The translations under genes and the position numbers were made by a program. Under the pieces are notes generated by a model that saw only the letters and a list, made by a program, of their open reading frames with translations, did not search any database and had not been told where the DNA came from. DNA of 64,000 nucleotides from positions 310,001-374,000 of the forward strand of contig NIVC01000230.1 of NCBI GenBank assembly GCA_002269645.1. Direction: 5' to 3'. Each line of letters starts with the position of its first letter. The stretch's first letter is position 1. Source of the DNA: Macrostomum lignano (Eukaryota). Shown here piece by piece: positions 25,961 through 59,078 of this stretch.

Positions 25961-26266
25961 ATCTTTTAATCTGTCAAACCAGTTTTCCATCCGCAATAAT
26001 TTCGCACATCTCATAACGCTTCAGCTATTCCAACGGATTCGCAAGCCACCAACCCGCGTCCCGCCTTCTCATTGGTTGAGCTCAAGTTCGAGGTGCGAAA
26101 GTTATATAAAACCAAGGTGTGAGAATTGATCTCGTTCACTCACCCCCCAATCCGATCAAGGCTTATAAAAAGCAGACACAATCCACTCTACATGGAATTA
26201 GAAACAACTTTAACGATTAAATATTATTGATATTTTCGCCAAGGAACCATATCATAATCAGTCATC

Positions 26267-27304
26267 ATGTGCAGTCGTCTGGCTGAACGAGAGCTGCGTC
26301 GGCATCGACAGACGGCAGCGCCGAGCGTCAGGCGGAGCTTCCGCAGCTGCCGAGCCGCTGGCAAGTCGCTGACCTCCTTGCTGCTGCTCAAGAGAAGCGG
26401 CGACAGCAGCAGCGGTACTAGCGGCTTCCATTTCGGCAGGGCGCTGCGTGACCAGCCGCAGACGGTGGTGGCCGGATTTGGCCCGGTGCCAAGCCTGCTG
26501 GCCGCCAGCTGCCGCTTCCTGTCCTCGGAGGCGGCGCAGTCAGCCGAGGGCCTGTTCCGGGTGGAGGGCGCCCGGCCGCGGCTGCTGCTGCTGCGCGCCA
26601 GGCTGGACGCCGACCGGAGCTGCGACATCCCGGCTGACACGCCTCCGCAGGACGTTTGTTCCACGTTGAAGGCCTGGCTAAGGCAGCTGCCGCGCCCGCT
26701 GCTGCCGGCTGCAACCGCCGAGGCTTTGTCCGGCGCTGCGAACTCGGCTCGCGAAGACTGCGACGGCGACGCTCAGCAGCGACTGTCGGCCCTCAGGGCG
26801 GTGGCGGCGGCGAATCTCGGCGGCGACGGAGGCTGCTCGGCCAGGGCGCTGCGCCTGCTGTGCCTGCTGCTGCACCGGCTGGCCGCTGCTGGTTGCCATG
26901 GCAACCGGATGGACTCGGCCAGTCTGGCCACCTGCCTCGGGCCCTGCCTGTACGGCGCAGCGACTGCCGACTCCGCCGAGACCGCCGCTCGTCTCAACCG
27001 CGGCGTCGCCCTCCTCATCCGCTCCGCCCCGGACATCCCGGATGCAGCTGCCGATGCAGATGAAGCCGAAGCCCAGCCTCCTTGTCAGAAGCTTCATCGT
27101 CGGCCGAGACCGCGCAGTCTCAGCCGCATCCGGGAGGCTGTGGTTCGAGCTGTCACTCGGCTCGGTGGCCAGAGTCGCAGTCGCAGCCGCAGTCGCAGCA
27201 CTTCCGTCTCGCTGCTGAGGCTGCCGAGAGAGCCGGCCAGGATGCAGCCGGCCGCAGCCTCCTCCAAGCCCGAGCTCACCCGAGTGCGAAGTTTGCTCAG
27301 ATGA
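26267..27304 (+). CDS. RhoGAP-domain protein, ARHGAP11-like, intronless
   Basis: FGRAL..VVAGFGPVPSLLAASCRFL, EGLFRVEG (arginine finger), LKAWLRQLPRPLLP, NRMDSASLATCLGPCL. ATTGG and TATAAAA elements lie upstream. Confidence 0.85.
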   Translation: MCSRLAERELRRHRQTAAPSVRRSFRSCRAAGKSLTSLLLLKRSGDSSSGTSGFHFGRALRDQPQTVVAGFGPVPSLLAASCRFLSSEAAQSAEGLFRVEGARPRLLLLRARLDADRSCDIPADTPPQDVCSTLKAWLRQLPRPLLPAATAEALSGAANSAREDCDGDAQQRLSALRAVAAANLGGDGGCSARALRLLCLLLHRLAAAGCHGNRMDSASLATCLGPCLYGAATADSAETAARLNRGVALLIRSAPDIPDAAADADEAEAQPPCQKLHRRPRPRSLSRIREAVVRAVTRLGGQSRSRSRSRSTSVSLLRLPREPARMQPAAASSKPELTRVRSLLR

Positions 27305-37029: not shown

Positions 37030-37740
37030 AAAGTCTCCATCTCTTCCTAAAATATACAAATCCTGGCTATATTTTTGGGCACTCAGCTTGAGTCTCACCG
37101 TTCGATAAGCCTAGCCAAGTCGTGGTGCCCGCCGCTTTTAGCAATATCCAAAGCACTGCGACCTTCACTATCCTTCAATTCCAGCAGTCTCAATCGTTTG
37201 TCATTGCTTTTCTGATTCCATTTTTTCAGACGCAACAGATGCAGCAGGTGCTTGGCGCAGTCACGACTGCCAGACAGCGCAGCCTCCATCAGCGGAGTGG
37301 CGCCTCGCCAATTCAGCAGCCACTTGGAGTCGAACGGCAGCAGCGCCAGCAGTCGCAGCTGGTTGCGCCTGGCCGCCAGGTGAGCTGCCGTGTCGCCAGA
37401 TTCCTCGTCTCTCGACATCGGATCAGCGCCTTGAAATAGAAAGTACTCGATGCACTTTGTTGTCGATACAGGCGTCTCATTGCAGGTGTCAGCTGCCGCT
37501 ACCAGCATGAGAACCGTCCAGCCTTTGTCATCGTCCACAGTTTTCACCAGGTCCGCGGTAGCGAAACGACGAACAAGGCTGATCTCGCCTTGAACAGCTA
37601 GCTGGGATAGTTCCTGATTCAAGGTGGGGAATATCTCTAACAGCAGGTTAGAGGAAATTTATTTGAGTTCTTACGATAGTTCAGTCGGCCCGTTTAGTCA
37701 CCTTTACATCGCAGGAAAATCTTGGCAAAGCCGACGCCAT
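37030..37740 (-). CDS. Ankyrin-repeat protein; main exon about 37613-37099, flanking exons tentative
   Basis: KGWTVLMLVAA, SGDTAAHLAAR, RGATPLMEAA, EGRSALDIAK. Strong donor cg|gtgaga at 37098; candidate ATG at 37740 and a short terminal exon near 37048. Confidence 0.7.
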
Positions 37741-42900: not shown

Positions 42901-44879
42901 CTGGCTGTGCAATATATGGTCTAGGCCAATAATTTTTATTCTAGGCCTAGGGTCCAAGTGACAATTATTGAATTAAGTCATGACATGAATGTTTTCTGTT
43001 CAGTAGGGACAAGGCCTTGAGTCTAAGGATTATATATTCTTGGATTTAACCTTTGTTAATATTAAGCCATATTTCAGATCTAGTCTAGGTCTAGGACCTA
43101 GGTCTAGCTGTCTAGGCCTTGTTCTATTGTTTAAAATTGAAAAAATAGCCTCCCTTACTACTAGTACTAGGCCCTAGTGGCTAGCTGTCAATTATCATAT
43201 TATATAAAACTACCTTTTTACAATTTAGGGCTATTCTCTATCTTAGTAAGTTTTGGTTTATCTTGGTTGAAGATCGTTGATCAACAAAAAGTTTGATTTA
43301 TTGCTGCGTCTCTATGCTTCAATCATTTGCTCTGAAACTTTTATCAATTCTTGATGCATGTCTTAGCTTTGCAATGACATCTTAGACACATGATTGCCTT
43401 TTGTATTTCCCAAGATATTCGCTTCCAAAATGTGTTTATAAGGGGTGCCAAATGAATTCATTTTTTGGCATACTTTGCATTTGTGCCAATGTTTTTTTCC
43501 TTTAGGACAGAAAATTTCTGCTTACAAATTTTTTAAGCTGAATATGGTGTCAGAGTAAGGAATGTATCCCAAAACATGAATTCATTTTTTGTATGAATTA
43601 TCTATTGGCAGTGCTTATCCCCACGGTACCGTAGGAATAATTTCTGTCTTATTCCAACGGTACCGTGCGAATAATTTTCTGCTTATCCGCACGGCACACT
43701 GAGGAGATAGCTGCCCTATCTTCTACATATGCCGTGCGAATAATTTTCTGCTTATCCGCACGGCACACTGACGAGATAGCTGCCCTATCTTCTACATATG
43801 CCGTGCGAATAATTTTCTGCTTATCCGCACGGCACACTGACGAGATATAGCTGCCCTATCTTCTACATATGCCGTGCGAATAATTTTCTGCTTATCCGCA
43901 CGGCACACTGACGAGATAGCTGCCCTATCTTCTACATATGCCGTGCGAATAATTTTCTGCTTATCCGCACGGCACACTGACGAGATAGCTGCCCTATCTT
44001 CTACATATGCCGTGTTGTGGCAAGTTTAGTACATACGATTTAAGTGCAGTATAACAACATAACTTGGCTTGAACATTTGTTCTAAAGAAATAAAGATTTT
44101 TTCTATGAGAAAGAATTTTTTTGTGTAGTAACAAATGATTTAAATTAAATTAACTCTAAGAATTGTTTATTATTTAAATTTTTAGCAAAGTCTAATCTGA
44201 TCTCGCCGTGATTTATATGGCGAAATCCAAAAACGTGGGATAAAGCGGTAAAACAAATCTGCGGACTATGAATGGAAGGTAATGTATCCGAAAAAGCATT
44301 TTAAAGGACAGGTAAGTCTTTAAAAAAAAGTTCAGGACACAAACTTTCATTTTTATACCACTGCATTGCTGAATAAACGAGCAAAACCACTAAAAAAGCA
44401 TTTTTTAAAGTGCGTATTGACACCTTCGCGATTATTTTTTTTCACTTTTTTTGCAAATAAACAATTAATTATAAGACTTTTTAGTCTCAAAAAGGGCTAA
44501 TTTTTTCTTTTGCTTACAAAGGAGAAAGAATTCTGTGTTTTACTTTTTATTTTTTTTAAAAAGAACAAGCAGTTCAAAAGATTTTGAACTTTTTCTAAAA
44601 CCACCTAAACTCTCAAAAACTCGATACTAACTCAAAGCGCAAACTTTGCCAGCAAACCTTTTTCTCCCGAAGTAAGTATACCACTTATTTCTTGTTGCAA
44701 AATAATCTTTAAGATGTCTTCTTTGATTTAAGTATTGACTTGTATCATGGTATTGTTCGTAATAGGCCATATTAAGGCTTTAAAAATTTCAGTGAAAAAT
44801 TTTGGACCACAAAATTTAAATCCGGAAATCAAATCAAATGCATCCTGTAGACGAAGTAAGCAATGAAATATCATAAACT

Positions 44880-45545
44880 TACACTTAAATATGCATCATC
44901 GCGGCGTGTATGCAGGAAAAAAAGAATTTTCTCAATAGGTATTGTAGAAGCTGAGAAAAACGCGATTTTCCAATCCTTATGGGAATTCTAATGTGTTACC
45001 CGGCTTCCAAAGTAAGCGCTTACTGTAAGCTTATTAAGCAACCAGGTATCGTGAAACTTCACTTAAATGTGTATCATCGCGGCGTGTATGCAGGAAAAAA
45101 TGAATTTTCTTGATAGGTATTGTAGAAGCTGAGAAAAACGCGATTTTCCAATCCTTATGGGAATTCTAATGTGTTACCCGGCTTCCAAAGTAAGCGCTTA
45201 CTGTAAGCTTATTAAGCAACCAGGTATCGTGAAACTTCACTTAAATGTGTATCATCGCGGCGTGTATGCAGGAAAAAAAGAATTTTCTTGATAGGTATTG
45301 TAGAAGCTGAGAAAAACGCGATTTTCCAATCCTTATGGGAATTCTAATGTGTTACCCGGCTTCCAAAGTAAGCGCTTACTGTAAGCTTATTAAGCAACCA
45401 GGTATCGTGAAACTTCACTTAAATGTGTATCATCGCGGCGTGTATGCAGGAAAAAAAGAATTTTCTTGATAGGTATTGTAGAAGCTGAGAAAAACGCGAT
45501 TTTCCAATCCTTATGGGAATTCTAATGTGTTACCCGGCTTCCAAA
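44880..45545. repeat. 178-bp tandem repeat, about 3.7 copies
   Basis: Unit starts at 44887, 45065, 45243 and 45421. Confidence 0.95.
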
Positions 45546-45957
45546 TAAGGTGTTGAATAAGTGTACTTTTATAATTTCTATGTATAATACACTTCAAACA
45601 ACTAGTAAGGCAGTTTTGGTATTTTTCATTTTGTTATAAACTAGTTTAGCATTTTAGGACAGCTAACTGAATCCCTTGATACACTTGCAGATCATGGCCA
45701 ATTCTATTCACTAATGTTGAATTGATTAATGAATAAATTATTAAAACACTATTTGCAGACTGGCAATATACCCAAAAGATGTGACTGATAATTGACAAAG
45801 CTTCTTTTCATTTATTAGATCAATAACCCAGGTTAAAAATAAGGCAACAATTGTTACATAACTAGATATAAAAGATAAAGACAATGGTGAGTGGAAAGCA
45901 CAGTATATATGCTATATAATAGCAACCCCCAACCCTGCTTTAGTGACTGGTCCATAC

Positions 45958-46100
45958 AAATATATCACTAAAAGCACTGGAAACCTCAAGAAGAGAAATA
46001 CTTGAACCTTCAATATATCACTAAAAGCACTGGAAACCTCAAGAAGAGAAATACTTGAACCTTCAATATATCACTAAAAGCACTGGAAACCTCAAGAAGA
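45958..46100. repeat. 53-bp tandem repeat, about 2.7 copies
   Basis: tatatcactaaaagcactgg at 45961, 46014 and 46067. Confidence 0.9.
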
Positions 46101-46448
46101 GAAATACTTAAACCTTCAATTTTCTAATTTTCGAAGCAGACAAAAACATTCTGGTTTGGAGTCTTGCAAATTTATAGCAACAATTGTATTGTGCATGATG
46201 AGGTATAGCACAATGAAAACAAAATGATTTTATTATTTAACTATTAAAAATTTTGTAAGTTCAAATGGATTTGTTAGCAGTGTAAATCCTTGCACTTTGC
46301 ACCTTGCACATTGCAAAAGTAAAGCACTCAAGTTTACTCACAATTCTATGTTGTACAAGTGTTGAGAAAAAGCAAGAATTACAGTAGTACATAGTATAGT
46401 TTATGTACTATGTGCTACTGTAATTTTTGCTAATTCACAGTTTCAGAT

Positions 46449-48900
46449 ATGACGAAGACCAAGTGCTCCAAGAGGAAGCTCAGCTCTGTTCAACAATATC
46501 AGGAACAGAAAGCCATGGACCCCACCTTCAAGGAGCGCCGACGTGAGTCTGACCGCAATCGCTACCAGAAGCAGCTTGCCACGGCAACAGATGAAGAGCT
46601 GAGTGTTCGTCGTGAGCAAAAGCGGAAGGCCATGGCCAAGTCAAGAGCCAAGAAGAAGCAGGAACTCCGTGATTCAGCAGCAGCCACCATCACCGCTGAG
46701 GACGCAGGTACTGTGGATTCAAAGGCTGACAGTGCTGTGACAACTGAGACCGAAGTCCAGACTGACAGTACTGATGACCGAGGCCGACGTCCAGACTGCT
46801 GACAGTACTGTGACAACCGAGGCCGACGTCCAGACTGACAGTACTGTGATGACCGAGGCCGACGTCCAGACTGCTGACAGTACTGTTGTGACCAAGTCCA
46901 ACCTGAAGTCTGCCGCTGCAACTCAGAGAGAGCGAGCAAAGCTCACGAACCGGATGGTGGCTGCTGGAGCTGAATCAGAGAGGCTTCGCAAAAAGATTAG
47001 GGAGCTTAAATCTGCACAAAAATCATCCGCCTACCCCGTTTTAGGTTTTCAGGTTTCATCTGCTGAGGATGTCGAAACGACCGACCACATCATCGATGCC
47101 CTGGTGTCCAACAAGAAGCTGACTGCCGTCCGACTCACCGTGTCCAAGATCTGCAAGTCTGCACCTGCCAACATTCGAGAGAAGGTCCTAAAGAAACTCC
47201 AATGCACCCACAAGGTTGTGAAGAAGGTACAAAAGCATCGGGTCGAGCGCCAACAAGAAGCCCTGGTCATCAAGTTCTACGAGCGAGATGACAACACACG
47301 CGCCAGTGCTTCCAAGAAGGAGACCATCTGCGTCAAGGGAGTCCATCACCAGAAGAGGTATCTCCTTCGCACTCGGAACGCCCTTTTCAAGAAGTTCAAG
47401 AAGGAGCATCCGAATTGCAAAGTGAGCAAAAGCAGTTTCTACAAGTGGAAACCGCGGTACATTGTCAAGCCACGGCTGGATGACCGGGACCAGTGTCTTT
47501 GCAAGCAATGCACCAACCTTGATGTATGTAAAATACTAATACTGTGTAATTTTACTAATTTTAGTTGTTTGTAATAACTAACACCATTTCACAAGTCTAT
47601 AGCACACTGCACACTGCACGACGCCCAAATTGCACTTGCACCTTGATTTGCACTATTTTGTTTGTAGCTGCTTCTCGCTGCCATGCATGCGGTCAAGCTT
47701 GTCAGGTCTAAGGACAAGCATAAGCTGCTGAAAACAATCATCTGTACCAACTCTGAACAGCATGCTTGCTTTAAAAGACAGTGCACAAGCTGCCAAAACA
47801 AGACTGCCATCAATCCAGAGGGACCAGCTTTAGAAACCGTGCACTACAAGGCCTGGGAAATTGTTCAGGAATCCAGGTTCCAATCTACGAAACTGATCGA
47901 CAAAACAGCCACCAAGGAGGAGATCATCGCCAAGCTAGACAAGGACCTCTCTGACTATGCTGGCCACTACATGCGAATTCGTCATCAATATGTAGCAATT
48001 GAACAACTGAAGGCGTCTCTAAAGCCAGGTCACCTGCTCCTGCATGTGGACTTCTCCGAGAACTACAGACTCAAGTACGGAACTGAAGTTACAGCTGCAC
48101 ACTTTGGTGGCCACAGTGAGGTGACCATCCACCAAGGCGTCGCCTACTGGAGGGTACCAGGCAACCCCAAAGTGATCGCAAAGTCCTTCGCATCGCTGTC
48201 TGATGACAACCGCAAAGTAAGACATTTTTGTCTGAAAGAAGTGTTAGGGAAAACTTGTAGAAATAGACCCAACTTCCAATATTTTAACCGGAATGCATCT
48301 TTATCTGAATCTCCAGGTTGCTGGTGCCATAGCAGCACATCTTAGCCTTGTCCTAGACCACTTCGCAGCTTCCGGCATCGGGCGAGTCAGCATCATTTCG
48401 GACTCGCCCAGCAGCCAATATCGTAACAAGAAGAATATCTTTGGCTTTGATGAGCTTATGCGCAGGCGAAACATCAGCGACTGGCAATGGATCTACACGG
48501 AGGCTGGACATGGCAAAGGTGCCGCGGACGGAGTGGGCGGCAACATCAAGCGACAATGCGACGCAGCTGCAGCAGCAGGAACTGATGTTGCTTCACTAGA
48601 CGACATGCTGCGAGTGCTCAATGCGGAGAAACAACTGAAGACCAAACTGTTCACAGTGACATCGGCGGAAATCGACACATGGATGGAATACATCAGCGCT
48701 GCCAATCTGCTCGACATGAAAGGTATTCGCTACACGCACCACGTGAGCCGGACGCAGGCAGGGATCATCTACAGGCAGCTAGTTTGCTGCTGCTCTGATC
48801 CCACCGAGACCTGCAGCTGCCATGGTGCTTTACTCTGGGTACCATTGGCACCGGCACAAACTAGGACCATCCAGCAAGCGGCCGACGGGACAGCACCAAC

Positions 48901-48942
<42 letters not shown>

Positions 48943-49159
48943 CGGCCGCAGACAACAGGATGAAGGACGACATGGCGGCGACTGGAACAAGTGCAAGGCG
49001 CCAGACTGCATCATCTCAAGCCTGCCACCGGAGCGCCAAGAGATAGAAATGACTGCCTGTGATGGATGTGATGACTGGTTCCACCTTTACTGTATTGGTT
49101 TTGACTACAACGACCTACCTGACATGTACTTTTGCGAGGATTGTAGGAGGGATGACTGA
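46449..49159 (+). CDS. DDD-type transposase (Sola-like motifs; superfamily uncertain) with RG linker and C-terminal PHD finger; exons 46449-47523, 47668-48216, 48317-49159; frameshift near 46770
   Basis: Phase-0 GT-AG introns. Motifs DQCLCKQC, HVDFSENY, ISDSPSSQYRN, EAGHGKGAADGVGGNIKR, YRQLVCCC..CSCH, then (GR)n and CKAPDC..MTACDGCDDWFHLYC..YFCEDC (C4HC3). Confidence 0.85.
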
Positions 49160-51296
49160 TGGATGCCTGCGTATAGACTTTTGACTTTAATACTTTTAGT
49201 TCTTTTTTACTTTTTTAGTACACTTCTACATGTATTAAAATATAGGTCTATGAAGTCATTGATTATGCTACGCAGTAATAATGCCAATAAAATACTTTAA
49301 ACACCTAGGACGAGGATGGACTCAGCTGATAACACCAGGATGAAGGACTACACTATGGCGACTGGTGAATTACAAGCTGCACTACACGGACTACACTATG
49401 GCAAAGTACAAAGCTGCATCGTCTACAAGTGTGCATCAGCTCATCTAATGGCTATGCAACCCAAAATTTGACTATAAGTACTAGGGACTTAGGGACCCTT
49501 ATTACTGCGATAGTAGTTGAGCTTAGTCAATTATTTAGGGTCAGCATTGTGTAGCTGACAGGAATAAATGTTTAGCTGACTTTGTCTTCCGTCTTATTCA
49601 TTTCCTTTTGACACTTACAAAACATATACTTATTAGTTATTTGTTGTTGCATGGTGTAACCCACTTATTTAATGGTACTTACATAAGCCAAATATTACAT
49701 GATTTATACTTTTTCTGAAGCTCAAGACTTAACTCCTCTCGTAGAGAATGTCTATTAAAAGTTTATGAAATTTAAAAGTCTATTAAATGTCATTCTGGCC
49801 TACATTAGATAAGTCATGCCACTATAGTGCATTTATTTACATTTTTTCTGCTTAAAGCCAATTCATTTTTTGGTTCCAACTTCCAACTAATTCAGTTCAT
49901 TCTTGTGCTTACATTTCAGATAATGGACAAAACGTACACAGTCCAGGACTATATTGCTGCCAAAAAGAAGTGCCCAATGTTGGAAGTGCCACCAAAGGGG
50001 AAAGTAAATCAAACACCCAAAGAAAGAAAAAAAATGAAGACGAAGCAGTCACTGACTTAGTGGCATGTAGAAAGAAGGGAGACAAGTGCCAATTTGCAGT
50101 TATAAAAAATAAATGAAGGAAAATCAAGAAACACAAAATATGAAAGTCAAATTTAACTTCTTTGGAAAATTTGAAGAGGTTTAAATAACTCAGCAAATTG
50201 GCACCTTAATGTTTTTTAAATGCTACACCAATAAGTTTTGTAATAATTTTTTTTGCTTTTTACTGCATTTTGTAAGAAGAATTATCACATTATTAATTAA
50301 TATAATGTTATTTGTATTAACCGTTACTTTTCATGTTCTGCATTTTTTTAATGTTAATACTGTTTTTAAGTTTTGTAATAACAATTCAAATATATAATTA
50401 ACACTAGTAGTAGTTTCTTATTAACAGAACTTGATGCATGAGTTAAAGTGCTTAAATTTAAATAGATTAATGCCAGACCTTTTCTTTGATTAAAAATGTT
50501 TGACATTGAAAAATCTTTTACATTGTATATTTAATATCAAAAGTTAATCAATATGCCGAAATAATCGTTCTGGAAGACTTAAAATCTGAGACTTGGATTA
50601 CTGATCGCATTCAGTATCATGGAGCACTCTGCAAAGGAAAAAGCATAATTGAATTTAAATCTCGAGAATTTTTAATTATTGTTAAATTAAAAAAAGATGT
50701 TGCAAATTAAATTCATAAAGTTTTTCCAGGTAAAAATTGTACTTTAAACTTACAATGGCACTCTTCTAACTTGCTTTACAGTTGATACTCTGAAAAGAGA
50801 GGTTTACTAAGTATTAATAACGTAAATTTAATTTTCCCTAACACATTAAATGACGCGTTCAATTTAGTAAATGACTCCAAGAAGTAACCACTTTTAATCG
50901 CAAATTATAAACGTTGTTAGGAGCAACAATGACATTAACAAAATACACCTAAATTATTTGCAAAATGTGACCATGCTAATAAAAACTTGATACAAATAAC
51001 TTATTTAAGGTTATTTACTATAGTAAAAAAGCTTTATTAACTGTTTTATCAGCACTATTTTAATCGTTATTTAGTTCAAAGTTTTAACAAATCTTTTCTT
51101 TCAAGCACACTTTATATACAGTTTATTTGTGCTTTTATTATACTTTCTTGATTCTTTGGTAGATTTTCAATAATTCTTAGCCATTTACTTGTTTTTTACT
51201 TGCAAAAAATGAAATCTGAAAAAATATGTCCCACGTTTTTGGATTTCGCCATATAGTCCATTGCCGCTTCCGTAGAATTTTACTACTCATGTGAAT

Positions 51297-51390: not shown

Positions 51391-52333
51391 ATGTGAATTC
51401 GCATGATTCATATTCATATTGCGGACAAGCAGAAAATTATTCGCACGGCATATGTAGAAGATGGGCAGCTATCTTGTCAGTGTGCCGTGCGGATAAGCAG
51501 AAAATTATTCGCACGGCATATGTAGAAGATAGGGCAGCTATCTCCTCAGTGTGCCGTGCGGATAAGCAGAAAATTATTCGCACGGTACCGTTGGAATAAG
51601 ACAGAAATTATTCCTACGGTACCGTGGGGATAAGCAGTGCCTTATCTATTTGAAGGAAAGAATATCTGTTTCTCTTTTTTTCAAATAAACATGGTTGTAA
51701 TGCTGTATACCAAAAATCATATATAATGGTTTTTATACCAGCCATTTATGCCAATCCATTTTCTATTAATTTTTATACAAAGTATTTAATTTTTAAGTTG
51801 AGGCTATTTTTTAGACTTACAATAAGATTTCTTATATAAATAACAAAATGGACTGTGGCATTTCAACAAATTTAAACTTTACTATATTTTTGCCACTTTA
51901 ACTTTTTAATTTTATGTGTTTATCAGTTTATTTGTTCAATTGTTTATTTTATAATAAACCTATATCATAAAAATTTAAGCAAAACAACCTGCTTCCAGCA
52001 AATTGACTTTTGGCAAATTGATTGCTACCAAAGTAGATCTACTAGCTTAAATTTTCATTGGTATATAAAAACTGTTTAAAATAGTTTATCTTGTATATTG
52101 ATCAATAAGTCAATATTTGTGCAAATACAGTGCAGTTAATACAGACCATATGACATACATTTTGGCTTCAATAGGGTGACAGTTATTTTTGCAGTCATGA
52201 CTCGTGATGGCACTTTAAATAAGTTATTAAAATTTCACAATACTTCAGAGCACAGCTTATTGTGATTATACAAAAGCAGTTCCTCATCTTGGTGCCTTAA
52301 CAACTATATATCATTAAGAGCACCACTGTTGCC

Positions 52334-55300
52334 ATGGAAACTGGCTATGAAGAATTCGTTGCTGGCTCCGGCCATTCAGCCACAGTTGGCGCGTCAACGC
52401 GCAGCAAATCCAGCAGCAGCGCCAGACAGAAGCAGCGCCAGCAGCAGCAGCAGTTCGATAAGCTTCAGGCTAAATTGGCCAAACTTGCCAAGCACAAGAA
52501 ATTGGCTGCCAAGACTGGCGCTCCGGCCGCCACCGCCGCTGCTGCCGCTGCCACTGCTGCCACTTCAAAGAAGAAGAAAAAGCAGCAAAAAGCGGCGGAA
52601 CAACAGCAACAGCAGCAAGTGCAGAAGCAGCAGCAACAGTCGCGCTTGTCAAAAAAGCAGCAGAAACAATTGAAGGAGCGCCAATCTGGCAGTGGCCGGT
52701 CCTCAGGTCGAGCTGAAGCCGCGGCCGCTTATCAGAACGACGACACCCTGTACGACTACGGACCCGAGGCGCAGGTGTTCCTCCGTATGCAGAGCTCTTT
52801 CGGCGGCGCCGATGCCTCTGCCGGTGCGACCAGCGTGAAAGAGCGAAAGCAGGCCAAGCCTGCCAAATTGAACAAGGTGATTTACCTGTTTTACTGTATT
52901 TTAAGCATCAGAACTACACAGTGCGTAAATAGAAAAAAATCTTCACCCTATCATTTGAGGCAAGAGAGGACAAAGAAGAGAGAGGGATTCGGAGAATGAG
53001 CTAAAAAGAGTCTCAAACCTTGAGCAGGCCGGATTGATATTGTCTAGTTTTAAAGAACCCGAGGGCCGGATAAAGAGACTTTTAATAAAGAGATATAAAA
53101 AATAAAGAGAATAAAATATAGATATAGTTAATATAGTTAAAATAAGAGTTTAAAATTAGACAGCATCAAACTTCGAAAGAAATGGGTAACCAATTTATTA
53201 AATTTGCAACCAAAAATACACGCGCAGGCTAAAGTTCGTCAGCAGCTCGATAGCGGCCAGGGCTTCGGCTTGCCGCAGCAGCAGCAACAGGCCCATCAGT
53301 TGCACCAGCATCATCAGCAACAGCGTCATCTTCAACGCCAGCATCATCATCACCAGCTGCAGCAGCAGCATCAGCTCTATCCTAGCGAGCAGAGGAACAC
53401 CTGCGCTATGAACGCCACCCACCTGAAGAACATGCTGAAGCTGCCCAAGGCGCACCGATGGGTGTTCTACGAATGGTTCTATTCTAACCTAGACCGGCCG
53501 CTCTTCCTTGGGCCGAACGATTTTCAAAATTGTCTACGCGAAACTTTCCCGCTATTGCGCACCAGGCGCTTAACCAGAGCGCAGTGGTCGCTGATTCGCA
53601 AACTGCTTGGCAAACCGCGCCGCTGTTCGCCGGCCTTCTTCGCCGAGGAGCGTCGAGCTTTGCACGAACGGCGCGATAAAATCCGTTCGCTGCAAAGGCG
53701 TCGATCCCTTAAAGAAGGCGAAAGTGTTCGGGAATTGCCGGATGATCTGCGAGTGCCAATGCCGCTTATTATTGGCACTAATGTGAGTGCTGTTCTTCGT
53801 TTGTTATATAATTAATTTCGATACATATCGGTCTAAACTTGACGAAAGTAATTAGTGTTTTCGATACATTTCGGCTTGAAATTGCCGATAGTAATAAAGA
53901 TTTCAATACATATCGGCTTTAAAAATAACTGATTAGCGATAAATATCTTCGATAAATATCGACTTAAGAGTACCGATTAATAAGTAATAAATATTTTCCA
54001 TACATATCGGTTAATATTTGCGCAGTCCGATAAATGCTAATAACTGTACTTTTATACATTTTAATTTTCCCTAACTATCACTTATTCTTTCTCAAACGAT
54101 ATGTATCGAAATCAGCTTTCGATTTATAGATTTTATGCTTCTATGCATTATTTGTCCCCAATGGTAATTTCTAGTTGTGGTCAAGGCTGAACTCTGCAGT
54201 TTAGCTCTTTGATACTTGGGTTAAAAGTGTTTTTCAAGAAATTTATCCAAATATTGTAGCTTTTGCGATGCATGTCGGTTAGATTTAGAGCTAACAGGCC
54301 TAACTGAAATGCCACCCACTTAACCAGGTGGTAGCCAGGGTTCGCTATCCAACCGATGGTCTCTACGCCGGCGTTGTTGACGCAATTGACGGCTACAATC
54401 ATTGCTACCGGGTCACTTTTGTCAAGCAGCCGCTAGGGACCCGGTCCATACCAGACTATGAGGTTCGCTCGATCATGGAACAGGAGAGCATTCCCTTGGC
54501 TTCCTACAAGACCAACCACCAGCCGTCTAGGGCGCTGTTCACCCCGGCCAGGCTGCTGGCTCAATCGTCCGCTAACAGCGCGTCCGCTTCCGGTCATCGA
54601 ATTGGCGGCGTCGGCGACATTGGCGAGGTCACCCCAGGCGGCGTTGTGAAGCTCGGCGGCCTGACGAGCGCGGCCGCCGCAGAGATGCCGCCGCTGGTTG
54701 TGTCCAGCGTGACCCGATCGGCTCAGATGCTCGGCTTGAACGAGGAGGACTCGTTTAGCGGCTACGCTATTCGGTTTCTGCTGGTGAGTCAAATGAAGCT
54801 TTGTAATTTTTGTGCTTAAGTACATTCTAGGAAGGTCGCTAAAGTACATGAATTCTGGGATGGTCTCTAAAGTGCATTCTGGAAGGTCGCTAAGAGTGCA
54901 TTCTGGAAGGTCGCTAAGAGTGCATTCTGGAAGGTCGCTAAGAGTGCATTCTGGAAGGTCGCTAAGAGTGCATTCTGGAAGGTCGCTAAGAGTGCATTCT
55001 GGGAGGTCGATAAAGTGCATTCTAGGAGGGTCGCTAAAGTGATCTAGTTATTAACCGTTTCTCTTAAAGTACATTCTAAAATACTCGTGTCAGTGCGCAG
55101 GCCGTAGATGCGTAATAAACATTCGTTCTTTTACATCTCCTTGCAGGTGCTTACCCGCCTGATGAAGATGGTAGAGCGCAAGAAACGCTGCCTGGACGAT
55201 CTGCGCCAGCTAAACGATCAAGCCGAACTGTTGGTCACCTCGGCTAGGCCAGCCAGTCTGCAGCTCGTGCACGACTATTCGGCCTGTCTGCTGGGTTTGC

Positions 55301-58530: not shown

Positions 58531-58602
58531 GGCTCAGTGGTCTAGGGGTATGATTCTCGCTTTGGGTGCGAGAGGTCCCGGGTTCAAATCCCGGCTGAGC
58601 CC
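58531..58602 (+). tRNA. tRNA-Pro(TGG): tRNA-Pro, anticodon TGG
   Basis: Acceptor stem GGCTCAG/CTGAGCC, anticodon stem CTCGC/GCGAG with loop TTTGGGT, GGTTCAAATCC T-arm, downstream T-run. Confidence 0.97.
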
Positions 58603-59004: not shown

Positions 59005-59021
59005 CGCCCCCGGGTGGGCTC

Positions 59022-59058
<37 letters not shown>

Positions 59059-59078
59059 GCCGATTGCGCCACGGAGGC
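59005..59078 (-). tRNA. tRNA-Asn(GTT): tRNA-Asn, anticodon GTT
   Basis: Reverse complement GCCTCCGTGGCGCAATCGGCTAGCGCGTTCGGCTGTTAACCGAAAGGTTGGTGGTTCGAGCCCACCCGGGGGCG folds as a cloverleaf. Confidence 0.97.

Follow-up and report, generated by a model that had tools for sequence, protein, structure and literature searches.

Mobile elements that carry their own reader of histone marks show how genomic parasites pick their landing sites, and the known examples include the chromodomains of long terminal repeat (LTR) retrotransposons and the PHD finger of RAG2. The RAG1/RAG2 recombinase combines a cut-and-paste enzyme of the DDE/D type with a PHD finger that binds histone H3 trimethylated at lysine 4 (H3K4me3), and here the finger is carried by a second subunit, RAG2, in which it follows a kelch propeller. 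In chromoviruses (Ty3/gypsy) and Maverick/Polinton elements, the integrase is fused in cis to a reader of methylated histone lysine; however, the chromodomain is aimed at heterochromatin marks, the integrase is of the retroviral type, and the elements do not move by cut and paste. We know of no demonstration that an ordinary cut-and-paste transposase directly reads a mark of active chromatin. Here, we analyze a stretch of 64,000 nucleotides from the flatworm Macrostomum lignano (assembly GCA_002269645.1, contig NIVC01000230.1, positions 310,001 to 374,000 of the forward strand), hereafter the window, in which a DNA transposon that almost certainly belongs to the Sola superfamily encodes a transposase ending in a PHD finger. 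An earlier interpretation of these letters, made without database searches (the sequence-only reading), had taken the gene to be a transposase fused to a PHD finger with hallmarks of an H3K4me3 reader.

PHD-bearing or PHD-like transposases are already known from Rehavkus and the piggyBac family, as are the RAG2 PHD and the chromodomain integrases. Rehavkus elements, which are related to Mutator-like elements (MULEs), encode a DNA transposase with a PHD finger and contain minisatellites (PMC6446971), but they belong to the Mutator-like superfamily and generate a 9-bp target-site duplication (TSD). In piggyBac, PiggyMac and Tpb2, cross-brace zinc fingers lie C-terminal to the transposase core and make chromatin or DNA contacts; the cysteine-rich domain (CRD) of piggyBac binds end DNA, that of PiggyMac folds differently and has only a weak affinity for H3, and that of Tpb2 prefers H3K9me3/K27me3 (PMC8086355). 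None of these three domains resembles a KDM5-type H3K4me3 reader in sequence. For a PHD finger on a Sola transposase, no description was found in the searchable literature, where only piggyBac/PiggyMac, RAG2 and Rehavkus surfaced. Thus, a Sola transposase with a finger that resembles the third PHD finger (PHD3) of KDM5 and has the H3K4me3 cage, the ancestral presence of this finger in a flatworm clade, and the coexistence of cage variants and PHD-less sister lineages in one genome appear to be new.

The resemblance to RAG, which the sequence-only reading had summarized as RAG1/RAG2-like, is of a limited kind. The Met and Trp at the cage positions of the finger are those of RAG2, in which an extra Tyr completes the cage, but the RAG1/Transib enzyme shares only the RNase H fold with Sola. 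No RAG1 match was obtained with Pfam, and no second open reading frame (ORF) that could encode a RAG2-like partner was found in the element. The comparison holds only as an analogy of functional logic, as the core is Sola-like rather than Transib/RAG1-like.

The transposon and its gene

The element extends over 7,032 bp (44219-51250) and contains a three-exon transposase gene in its interior (Table 1). Its ends are formed by terminal inverted repeats (TIRs) of the sequence GGCGAAATCCAAAAACGTGGGA, which occurs twice in the window against an expectation of 0 and also ends the copies on contigs C1950 and C1298; no subterminal repeats of the TIR core motif were found within the element. Three copies are present genome-wide, which are 98-99.7% identical over 7.04 kb, lie in different flanks and diverge abruptly at the same two points. 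When the flanks in the window are joined through a single ATAT, they match three loci (on C3480, C350 and C1119) at 100% over 304 nt. The TSDs are ATAT in the window and CATA and ATAT at the other two copies, and uninterrupted empty sites were found for all three; those of the window copy and of copy A (on C1950) prove a duplication of 4 bp. We are therefore highly confident that 44219-51250 is a copy of an autonomous and recently mobile DNA transposon.

The element is itself nested at the centre of another repeat, which is marked by inverted arrays of a 69-bp unit at 43607-44014 (5.1 copies) and 51420-51641 (2.4 copies). The longest pair of arms measures 179 nt with 99% complementarity, and the uninterrupted host repeat is present at dozens of other loci; this repeat looks like a foldback or long-TIR non-autonomous element.

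A Pfam scan of the full protein matched only the PHD finger, and no model covers the catalytic core, because Sola has no Pfam family (PMC5751038). Membership was assessed by direct comparison with Sola2_DFa-2 of Dictyostelium fasciculatum (sequence from the supplement of PMC3627910), a comparison that covered Sola2. BLASTP aligned the core with this protein at E = 1e-6, with approximately 22% identity over 180 residues that include all three Asp motifs, and hhalign gave 93% probability (E = 3e-7). The aligned motifs are DFSEN/DFKEN (the latter within MDFKEN), SDS/SDG and GHGKGAAD/YHGKSDVD. The catalytic residues D176, D257 and D300 (in HVDFSEN, SDSPSS and GHGKGAAD) are invariant in sets of 21 and of 147 homologues. 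In an AlphaFold2 (AF2) model of a close homologue, P0004, with a mean predicted local distance difference test (pLDDT) score of 76, the predicted topology is beta1-beta2-beta3-alpha-beta4-alpha-beta5-alpha, and the first Asp lies on beta-1, the second where beta-4 ends and the third where the helix that follows beta-5 begins, which are the canonical places of RNase H-like enzymes. The Foldseek neighbours of the core (Argonaute PIWI, herpesvirus terminase nuclease, RuvC and RNase HII) are likewise RNase H-like. For Sola1 and Sola2 elements, the TSDs described in the literature are 4 bp long, AT-rich and of the AWWT type (PMC3845634; PMC3627910), and the window element shares with Sola the motifs D-F-x-E-N, S-D-x and H-G-K-x-x-x-D in the same order, short TIRs and AT-rich 4-bp TSDs. 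As the DDD triad, the similarity to a published Sola transposase, the TSD and the TIRs are all present, the element is filed under the Sola superfamily, a placement resting on Sola2 sequences that we hold with high confidence. In contrast to the window protein, Sola2_DFa-2 ends in an acidic low-complexity tail and carries no PHD finger.

Introns, a PHD finger and an RG-rich tail are features of many chromatin proteins, and the gene might thus be considered a domesticated host gene that joins a transposase-derived domain to a PHD finger. However, the TIRs, TSDs and empty sites, the near-identical copies in different flanks, and the dozens of related copies, many of them decayed, are those of a transposon; the structure of the element refutes domestication, to which we attach practically no weight. 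The DDD core, the TIRs, the proven TSD and the recently mobile copies bear out the DNA transposase named in the sequence-only reading.

Translation places the gene between an ATG at 46449 and a TGA at 49157-49159. Two introns are predicted at 47524-47667 (GTATGT..AG) and 48217-48316 (GTAAGA..AG), both in phase 0 with canonical ends, and the GTATGT donor lies directly 3' of the codon D that ends exon 1. Once they are removed, the protein is again exactly colinear, residue for residue, with paralogues that lack introns and lie at other places in the genome (for example, ...CKQCTNLD/LLLAAMHAVKL in the window, with the junction at the slash, and ...CPLCTNVDLLVEGICKAKL in the paralogue). Exon 3 is a single open frame (48248-49159 from stop to stop in the list of ORFs), in which the second-Asp motif IISDSPSSQYRN (48392-48427, containing SDSPSSQYRN) and the third-Asp motif EAGHGKGAADGVG (48500-48538, containing GHGKGAADG) precede the linker and the finger, just as the sequence-only reading had described for GHGKGAAD, GRGRGR and a complete finger in one exon. 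As the PHD finger shares this exon with two of the three catalytic motifs, the fusion is not an artefact of the gene model, and exon skipping would remove the finger only by destroying the enzyme. The linker is encoded by a microsatellite that contains a perfect (AGGACG)x7 at 48901-48942 (Tandem Repeats Finder (TRF), period 6, 7.0 copies, 100%), translated as GRGRGR..., with one unit fewer in the copy on C1298. This region is disordered in the AF2 models, and most subfamilies of the flatworm clade, including those that lack the finger, have an RG/RGG tract at this position.

The window copy as assembled carries a 2-bp (TG) deletion in exon 1 at approximately 46771-46773, which shifts the frame after codon 107. 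The deletion lies inside a 36-bp coding tandem repeat (46725-46893, with peptide units like DSTVTTEADVQT), the copy number of which differs among copies of the element (three additional units on C1298), and it is private to the window copy, as both sister copies keep the TG. The sister copies are intact spliced ORFs of 822 residues (copy A, C1950) and 858 residues (copy B, C1298), so that the spliced protein of approximately 820 residues previously expected from this locus exists in them and is frameshifted in the window. An in-frame ATG at 46774 would still yield a product of 713 residues. For the window copy, three possibilities follow: recent inactivation, translation from ATG 46774, or an indel error of the long-read assembly. 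A hidden intron was also considered as the cause of the frame break and was rejected, since both sister copies carry the extra TG.

The finger and its distribution in the family

The finger has the form CKAPDC-x18-CDGC-x4-H-x2-C-x15-CEDC, that is, C-x4-C-x18-C-x2-C-x4-H-x2-C-x15-C-x2-C, a full C4HC3 set of ligands. Pfam PF00628 (curated cutoff 24 bits) is matched with 28.1 bits when the whole protein is scanned (E 2e-6) and with 33.5 bits when the finger is scanned alone (E 4e-8), which confirms the complete PHD finger anticipated from the letters. The AF2 model of the finger has a pLDDT of 80-89 over the domain, and its top Foldseek matches in the PDB are all PHDs (probability 0.97-1.00), mostly in H3K4me3 complexes, with modest E-values for so small a domain. 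By sequence, the closest solved structures are PHF2, MLL5, KDM5B PHD3, CFP1, Spp1, PHF23, PHF13, PHF8, KDM5A PHD3, BPTF, TAF3 and ING, which are established readers of methylated H3K4, as the titles of their PDB entries also show; the AF2 model of the finger retrieves this set as well. A profile of the fingers of the family matched KDM5B PHD3 (5e-12) and KDM5A PHD3 (5e-11) far ahead of all other PHDs, and the match includes the unusual C-x4-C first ligand pair, WVQCDG and both cage Trp residues. Judged by these similarities, the finger belongs to the KDM5-PHD3-like group, although KDM5A/B carry theirs on a demethylase and the present one is on a transposase.

A Trp before the zinc-binding His is a hallmark of methyl-lysine-binding PHDs, and a Met at the first cage position is also found in ING2, TAF3 and RAG2. 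In the window finger, the Trp is located in DDWFH (49076), two residues before the zinc-binding His, and the first cage position, three residues before Cys3, is occupied by Met (EMTAC; EMTACDGCDDWFH), as in the aligned PHF2 and MLL5. The H3K4me3 cage of KDM5A PHD3 consists solely of two Trp residues, Trp18 and Trp28 (PMC9814790), which correspond in the alignment to the two Trp positions of the family, one three residues ahead of Cys3 and the other two ahead of the zinc-binding His. Compared with KDM5A/B PHD3, the window finger has Met for the first Trp, a 4-residue insertion in loop 1, and a spacing of the cage residues that is one shorter. Another Trp stands three residues upstream of Cys1 (DWNKC), and a contribution of this residue to the cage may or may not exist. 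The Met and Trp that had been singled out beforehand as reader hallmarks do occupy the positions used in solved H3K4me3 readers (PHF2, MLL5, TAF3 and ING), but the aromatic residue beside Cys1 is missing.

A six-frame search of the genome returned at least 95 matching places, and the finger is kept in at least six transposase subfamilies of M. lignano that are only 40-46% identical. Homologous fingers at the same place in paralogues so divergent indicate that the PHD is not there by chance. The window type, with Met at the first cage position, has three copies. Trp is present at both cage positions in the L007 type, which comprises at least six near-identical intronless ORFs of 771 residues in addition to older copies, in the L013 type (several copies: L013, L043 and L044), in the L016 type (several copies: L016, L017, L026 and L042) and in the decayed L036/L029 type; the L035/L039 type, with at least three loci (L035, L039 and L046, on C516, C1600 and C779), departs at the second. 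Metagenomic relatives P0002 (truncated), P0004 and P0008 also bear the finger. Among eight distinct fingers, all seven Cys and the His are kept in every complete one (L036 breaks off before the last Cys pair), the Trp before the His is found in seven, and the Trp three residues before Cys3 likewise in seven. The adjacent linker varies freely across the subfamilies, and the retention of the ligands beside it suggests purifying selection on the finger while the elements were active.

The L014, L018 and L015/P0005 lineages stop after the RG/RGG tract and have no finger. A maximum-likelihood tree built from the cores places all flatworm-type sequences in one clade (99% support); within it, the lineages without a finger branch from among those that bear one, and P0008, which has the finger, belongs to the sister clade. 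The simplest reading of this pattern is a single ancient gain, with the finger already in place in the ancestor of the flatworm Sola clade, followed by two or more losses. The sequence-only reading had named absence of the PHD from other family members as grounds for refutation, and it is not refuted on this count, as most subfamilies of the flatworm clade keep the PHD. A candidate PHD encoded downstream in the L018 family (a match to 'VKCTLCLKYYHSSC') turned out to be a lone fragment whose frame is closed, and it was discarded. One L018-type copy (L020/L030, C137:300860-306376) has most of its catalytic core duplicated internally, in tandem and in frame, which gives an open frame of 1,149 residues.

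Recent activity is also evident in a finger-bearing subfamily other than that of the window. A young L007-type element of 6.3 kb (C3377:9238-15562, L053/L054), with the TIR GGTCGTTCTCAAA, is absent from the paralogous or allelic site on C1673 (L055), which is 99.3-99.5% identical, indicating recent transposition. The TSD of this copy is ambiguous and may be read as CACTTG, ACTT or CT (6, 4 or 2 bp).

Beyond M. lignano, a profile of the family retrieved 17,745 representatives in public data, and the tails of the best 142 were inspected. By Pfam, no other reader domain was found in the long C-terminal tails of 52 family representatives. Many non-flatworm members (P0009, P0014, P0035, P0044 and P0139) have a conserved C-terminal motif of approximately 90 residues, G-x-[FY]-[VL]-x-V-x-F ... 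V-x-F-[LM]-K ... R-x-x-Y-x-F, which stands where the flatworm clade has the PHD and resembles a small beta-barrel, perhaps Tudor- or chromo-like, with no Pfam match.

Possible roles of the finger

The best overall explanation of these observations is a Sola transposase whose PHD would tether it to H3K4-methylated nucleosomes, an explanation whose chances we judge to be evenly balanced. The PHD would bind the H3 tail methylated at K4 through a pocket that would be a two-Trp half-cage in the relatives and Met plus Trp in the window lineage, and it would thereby hold the transposase, or its synaptic complex, at such nucleosomes. The RG linker, being flexible, would give the catalytic core access to AT-rich 4-bp targets close by. 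More speculatively, the reintegration of excised elements would be biased toward transcriptionally active and accessible chromatin. Methyl-H3K4 reading by the fingers of the family seems slightly the more probable outcome, and for the Met variant in the window it is somewhat doubtful. A measurable promoter-proximal bias of insertion is unlikely in our estimation. The widest proposal, that the flatworm Sola clade represents a single-polypeptide transposase guided by a chromatin mark, in which a KDM5-PHD3-derived finger and an RG tether would steer excision or integration to the active promoters of germline or stem-cell genes, is put forward tentatively and judged unlikely.

Several observations weigh against tethering to methylated H3K4. 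At the first cage position the window lineage has Met instead of Trp, and beside Cys1 it has Lys where the Met-type cages of ING2, PHF2, TAF3 and RAG2 have Tyr or Trp, so that its finger appears to fall short of both the two-Trp and the full Met-type cage; as judged by these residues, the cage of the window copy is the weakest and least complete in the family. In the L035/L039 type, whose finger is otherwise intact, a Lys replaces the cage Trp ahead of the zinc-binding His (CDGCRRKSHCEC), and a PHD can therefore persist without the canonical cage. The finger is also rare in the wider family, a PHD-like C-terminal finger being seen in 4 of the best 142 representatives, and two flatworm lineages lost it yet multiplied (the L018 type to at least nine copies), which makes it dispensable for transposition. 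Finally, each of the three insertions of the window family is embedded in another interspersed repeat and none is obviously at a promoter, a distribution that survivorship could explain.

A finger that binds H3 tails or another protein without selectivity for K4me3, whether by preferring unmodified or lower-methylated K4 or by binding weakly, could serve as a general chromatin or nuclear anchor or as a regulatory module. The window finger, with only Met and Trp and the third aromatic wall missing, is open to this interpretation, as are the insertions in repeats, and the CRD of PiggyMac, which binds H3 weakly whatever its methylation state, provides a parallel (PMC8086355). On the other hand, the Trp before the zinc-binding His is kept, relatives possess the full two-Trp cage of the KDM5A type, and readers of unmodified K4 (BHC80 and AIRE) stand far lower or are absent among the matches of the finger; we therefore regard non-selective binding as rather unlikely. 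Binding of the transposon's own DNA ends, or assistance in the assembly of the synaptic complex, would remove histone marks from the account altogether. Such a role has its precedent in piggyBac, where a PHD-like cross-brace finger, likewise C-terminal to the catalytic core, binds transposon-end DNA and not histones (PMC8086355), and it would suit both the L035/L039 finger without its cage Trp and the neighbouring RG/RGG tract, a sequence of nucleic-acid-binding type. However, the sequence and predicted fold are those of a histone-reader PHD with KDM5A/B PHD3 and H3K4me3 readers as best matches and with conserved cage residues, and PHD-less lineages still transposed. In addition, subfamilies with quite different TIRs (GGCGAAATCC... 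vs GGTCGTTCTC...) have near-identical finger motifs, which is not expected of a domain that recognizes end sequences, and end binding is accordingly considered improbable.

The finger might also be a neutral passenger, a host exon taken up by the element (from a KDM5-like gene, for instance) and serving no function in it. DNA transposons are known to acquire pieces of their hosts, the domain that the finger most resembles, KDM5 PHD3, is of host type, and the lineages in which the finger was lost, on at least two occasions, persisted. This explanation is nevertheless very unlikely, as zinc ligands and cage residues were retained across at least six subfamilies with cores 40-46% identical while the linker diverged freely, and a neutral zinc finger of 50 residues would not keep eight ligands over such divergence.

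For the place of insertion itself, the steering to active promoters that the sequence-only reading had suggested found no support, given the repeats that harbour all three copies. Two copies do lie near genes. The window copy ends approximately 1.1 kb upstream of an ORF at 52301-52999, possibly the first exon of a DIRP/LIN-9-like gene (DIRP domain at 53141-53815), and the young L007-type copy is 3.3 kb upstream of an RPB3-like gene in the same orientation, the two being fused in a public model (P0010). These cases are anecdotes and are not evidence for targeting.

The genome of M. lignano offers a natural experiment, in which young and apparently intact two-Trp, Met-variant, cage-less and finger-less families share the same core and host. 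If the clade were a convergent counterpart of RAG1/RAG2, the PHD-less sister families would be its built-in controls. A finger that biases integration would inform the origin of RAG-type logic and may inspire chromatin-targeted transposase tools, and one that does not would be one more domain accretion on a transposase.

Other features of the window

The features of the element and of the remainder of the window are collected in Table 1.

Table 1. Positions of the transposon, its gene and other features in the 64-kb window
Feature	Position	Strand	Remarks
Left TSD, ATAT	44215..44218		flanks joined with a single ATAT match other loci
5' TIR	44219..44240	+	22 bp, perfect inverted match to 51229-51250
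Internal tandem repeat, 178 bp, 3.8 copies	44875..45549		5' non-coding part; TRF, 98% matches; in all three copies
Internal tandem repeat, 53 bp, 3.1 copies	45959..46120		upstream of ATG; TRF, 99% matches
Exon 1	46449..47523	+	basic N-terminus, 36-bp coding repeat, helical region with CLCKQC (47494-47511)
Exon 2	47668..48216	+	first catalytic Asp in HVDFSENY (48043-48066)
Exon 3	48317..49159	+	second and third Asp, Cys-rich motif (48779-48823), RG linker, PHD finger, stop
RG-repeat linker, GRGRGRGRGRGRGRGRR	48902..48952	+	encoded by (GGACGA)n
C4HC3 PHD finger	48992..49144	+	cage-position Met 49049-49051, cage Trp 49076-49078
3' non-coding part, ~2.1 kb	49160..51228		ORFs of at most 98 residues only; conserved among the three copies
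3' TIR	51229..51250	-	perfect 22-bp inverted repeat
Right TSD, ATAT	51251..51254		junctions, empty sites
U6 small nuclear RNA (snRNA) gene, full-length	13351-13457	-	118 bits
tRNA gene	58531-58602	+	
tRNA gene	59005-59078	-	
Host-gene exons, three coordinate sets	26258-27304; 37095-37658; 52301-53815	+; -; +	RhoGAP domain, ankyrin repeats, DIRP (LIN-9) domain
Minisatellite arrays	6.2-8.4, 11.3-13.2, 18.5-19.7, 23.2-23.9, 24.5-25.5, 29.5-30.8, 36.2-36.9, 54.8-56.5 kb		

Long minisatellite arrays are unusually frequent in the window; they are open in several frames on both strands and can mimic long ORFs. At 2966-5547 on the forward strand lies a pair of long ORFs with similarity to a transposase-associated protein (a weak match to DUF4218, and an HGCPYC motif), interrupted by a microsatellite encoding (LSIY)n; they are probably the remnant of another, unrelated DNA transposon.

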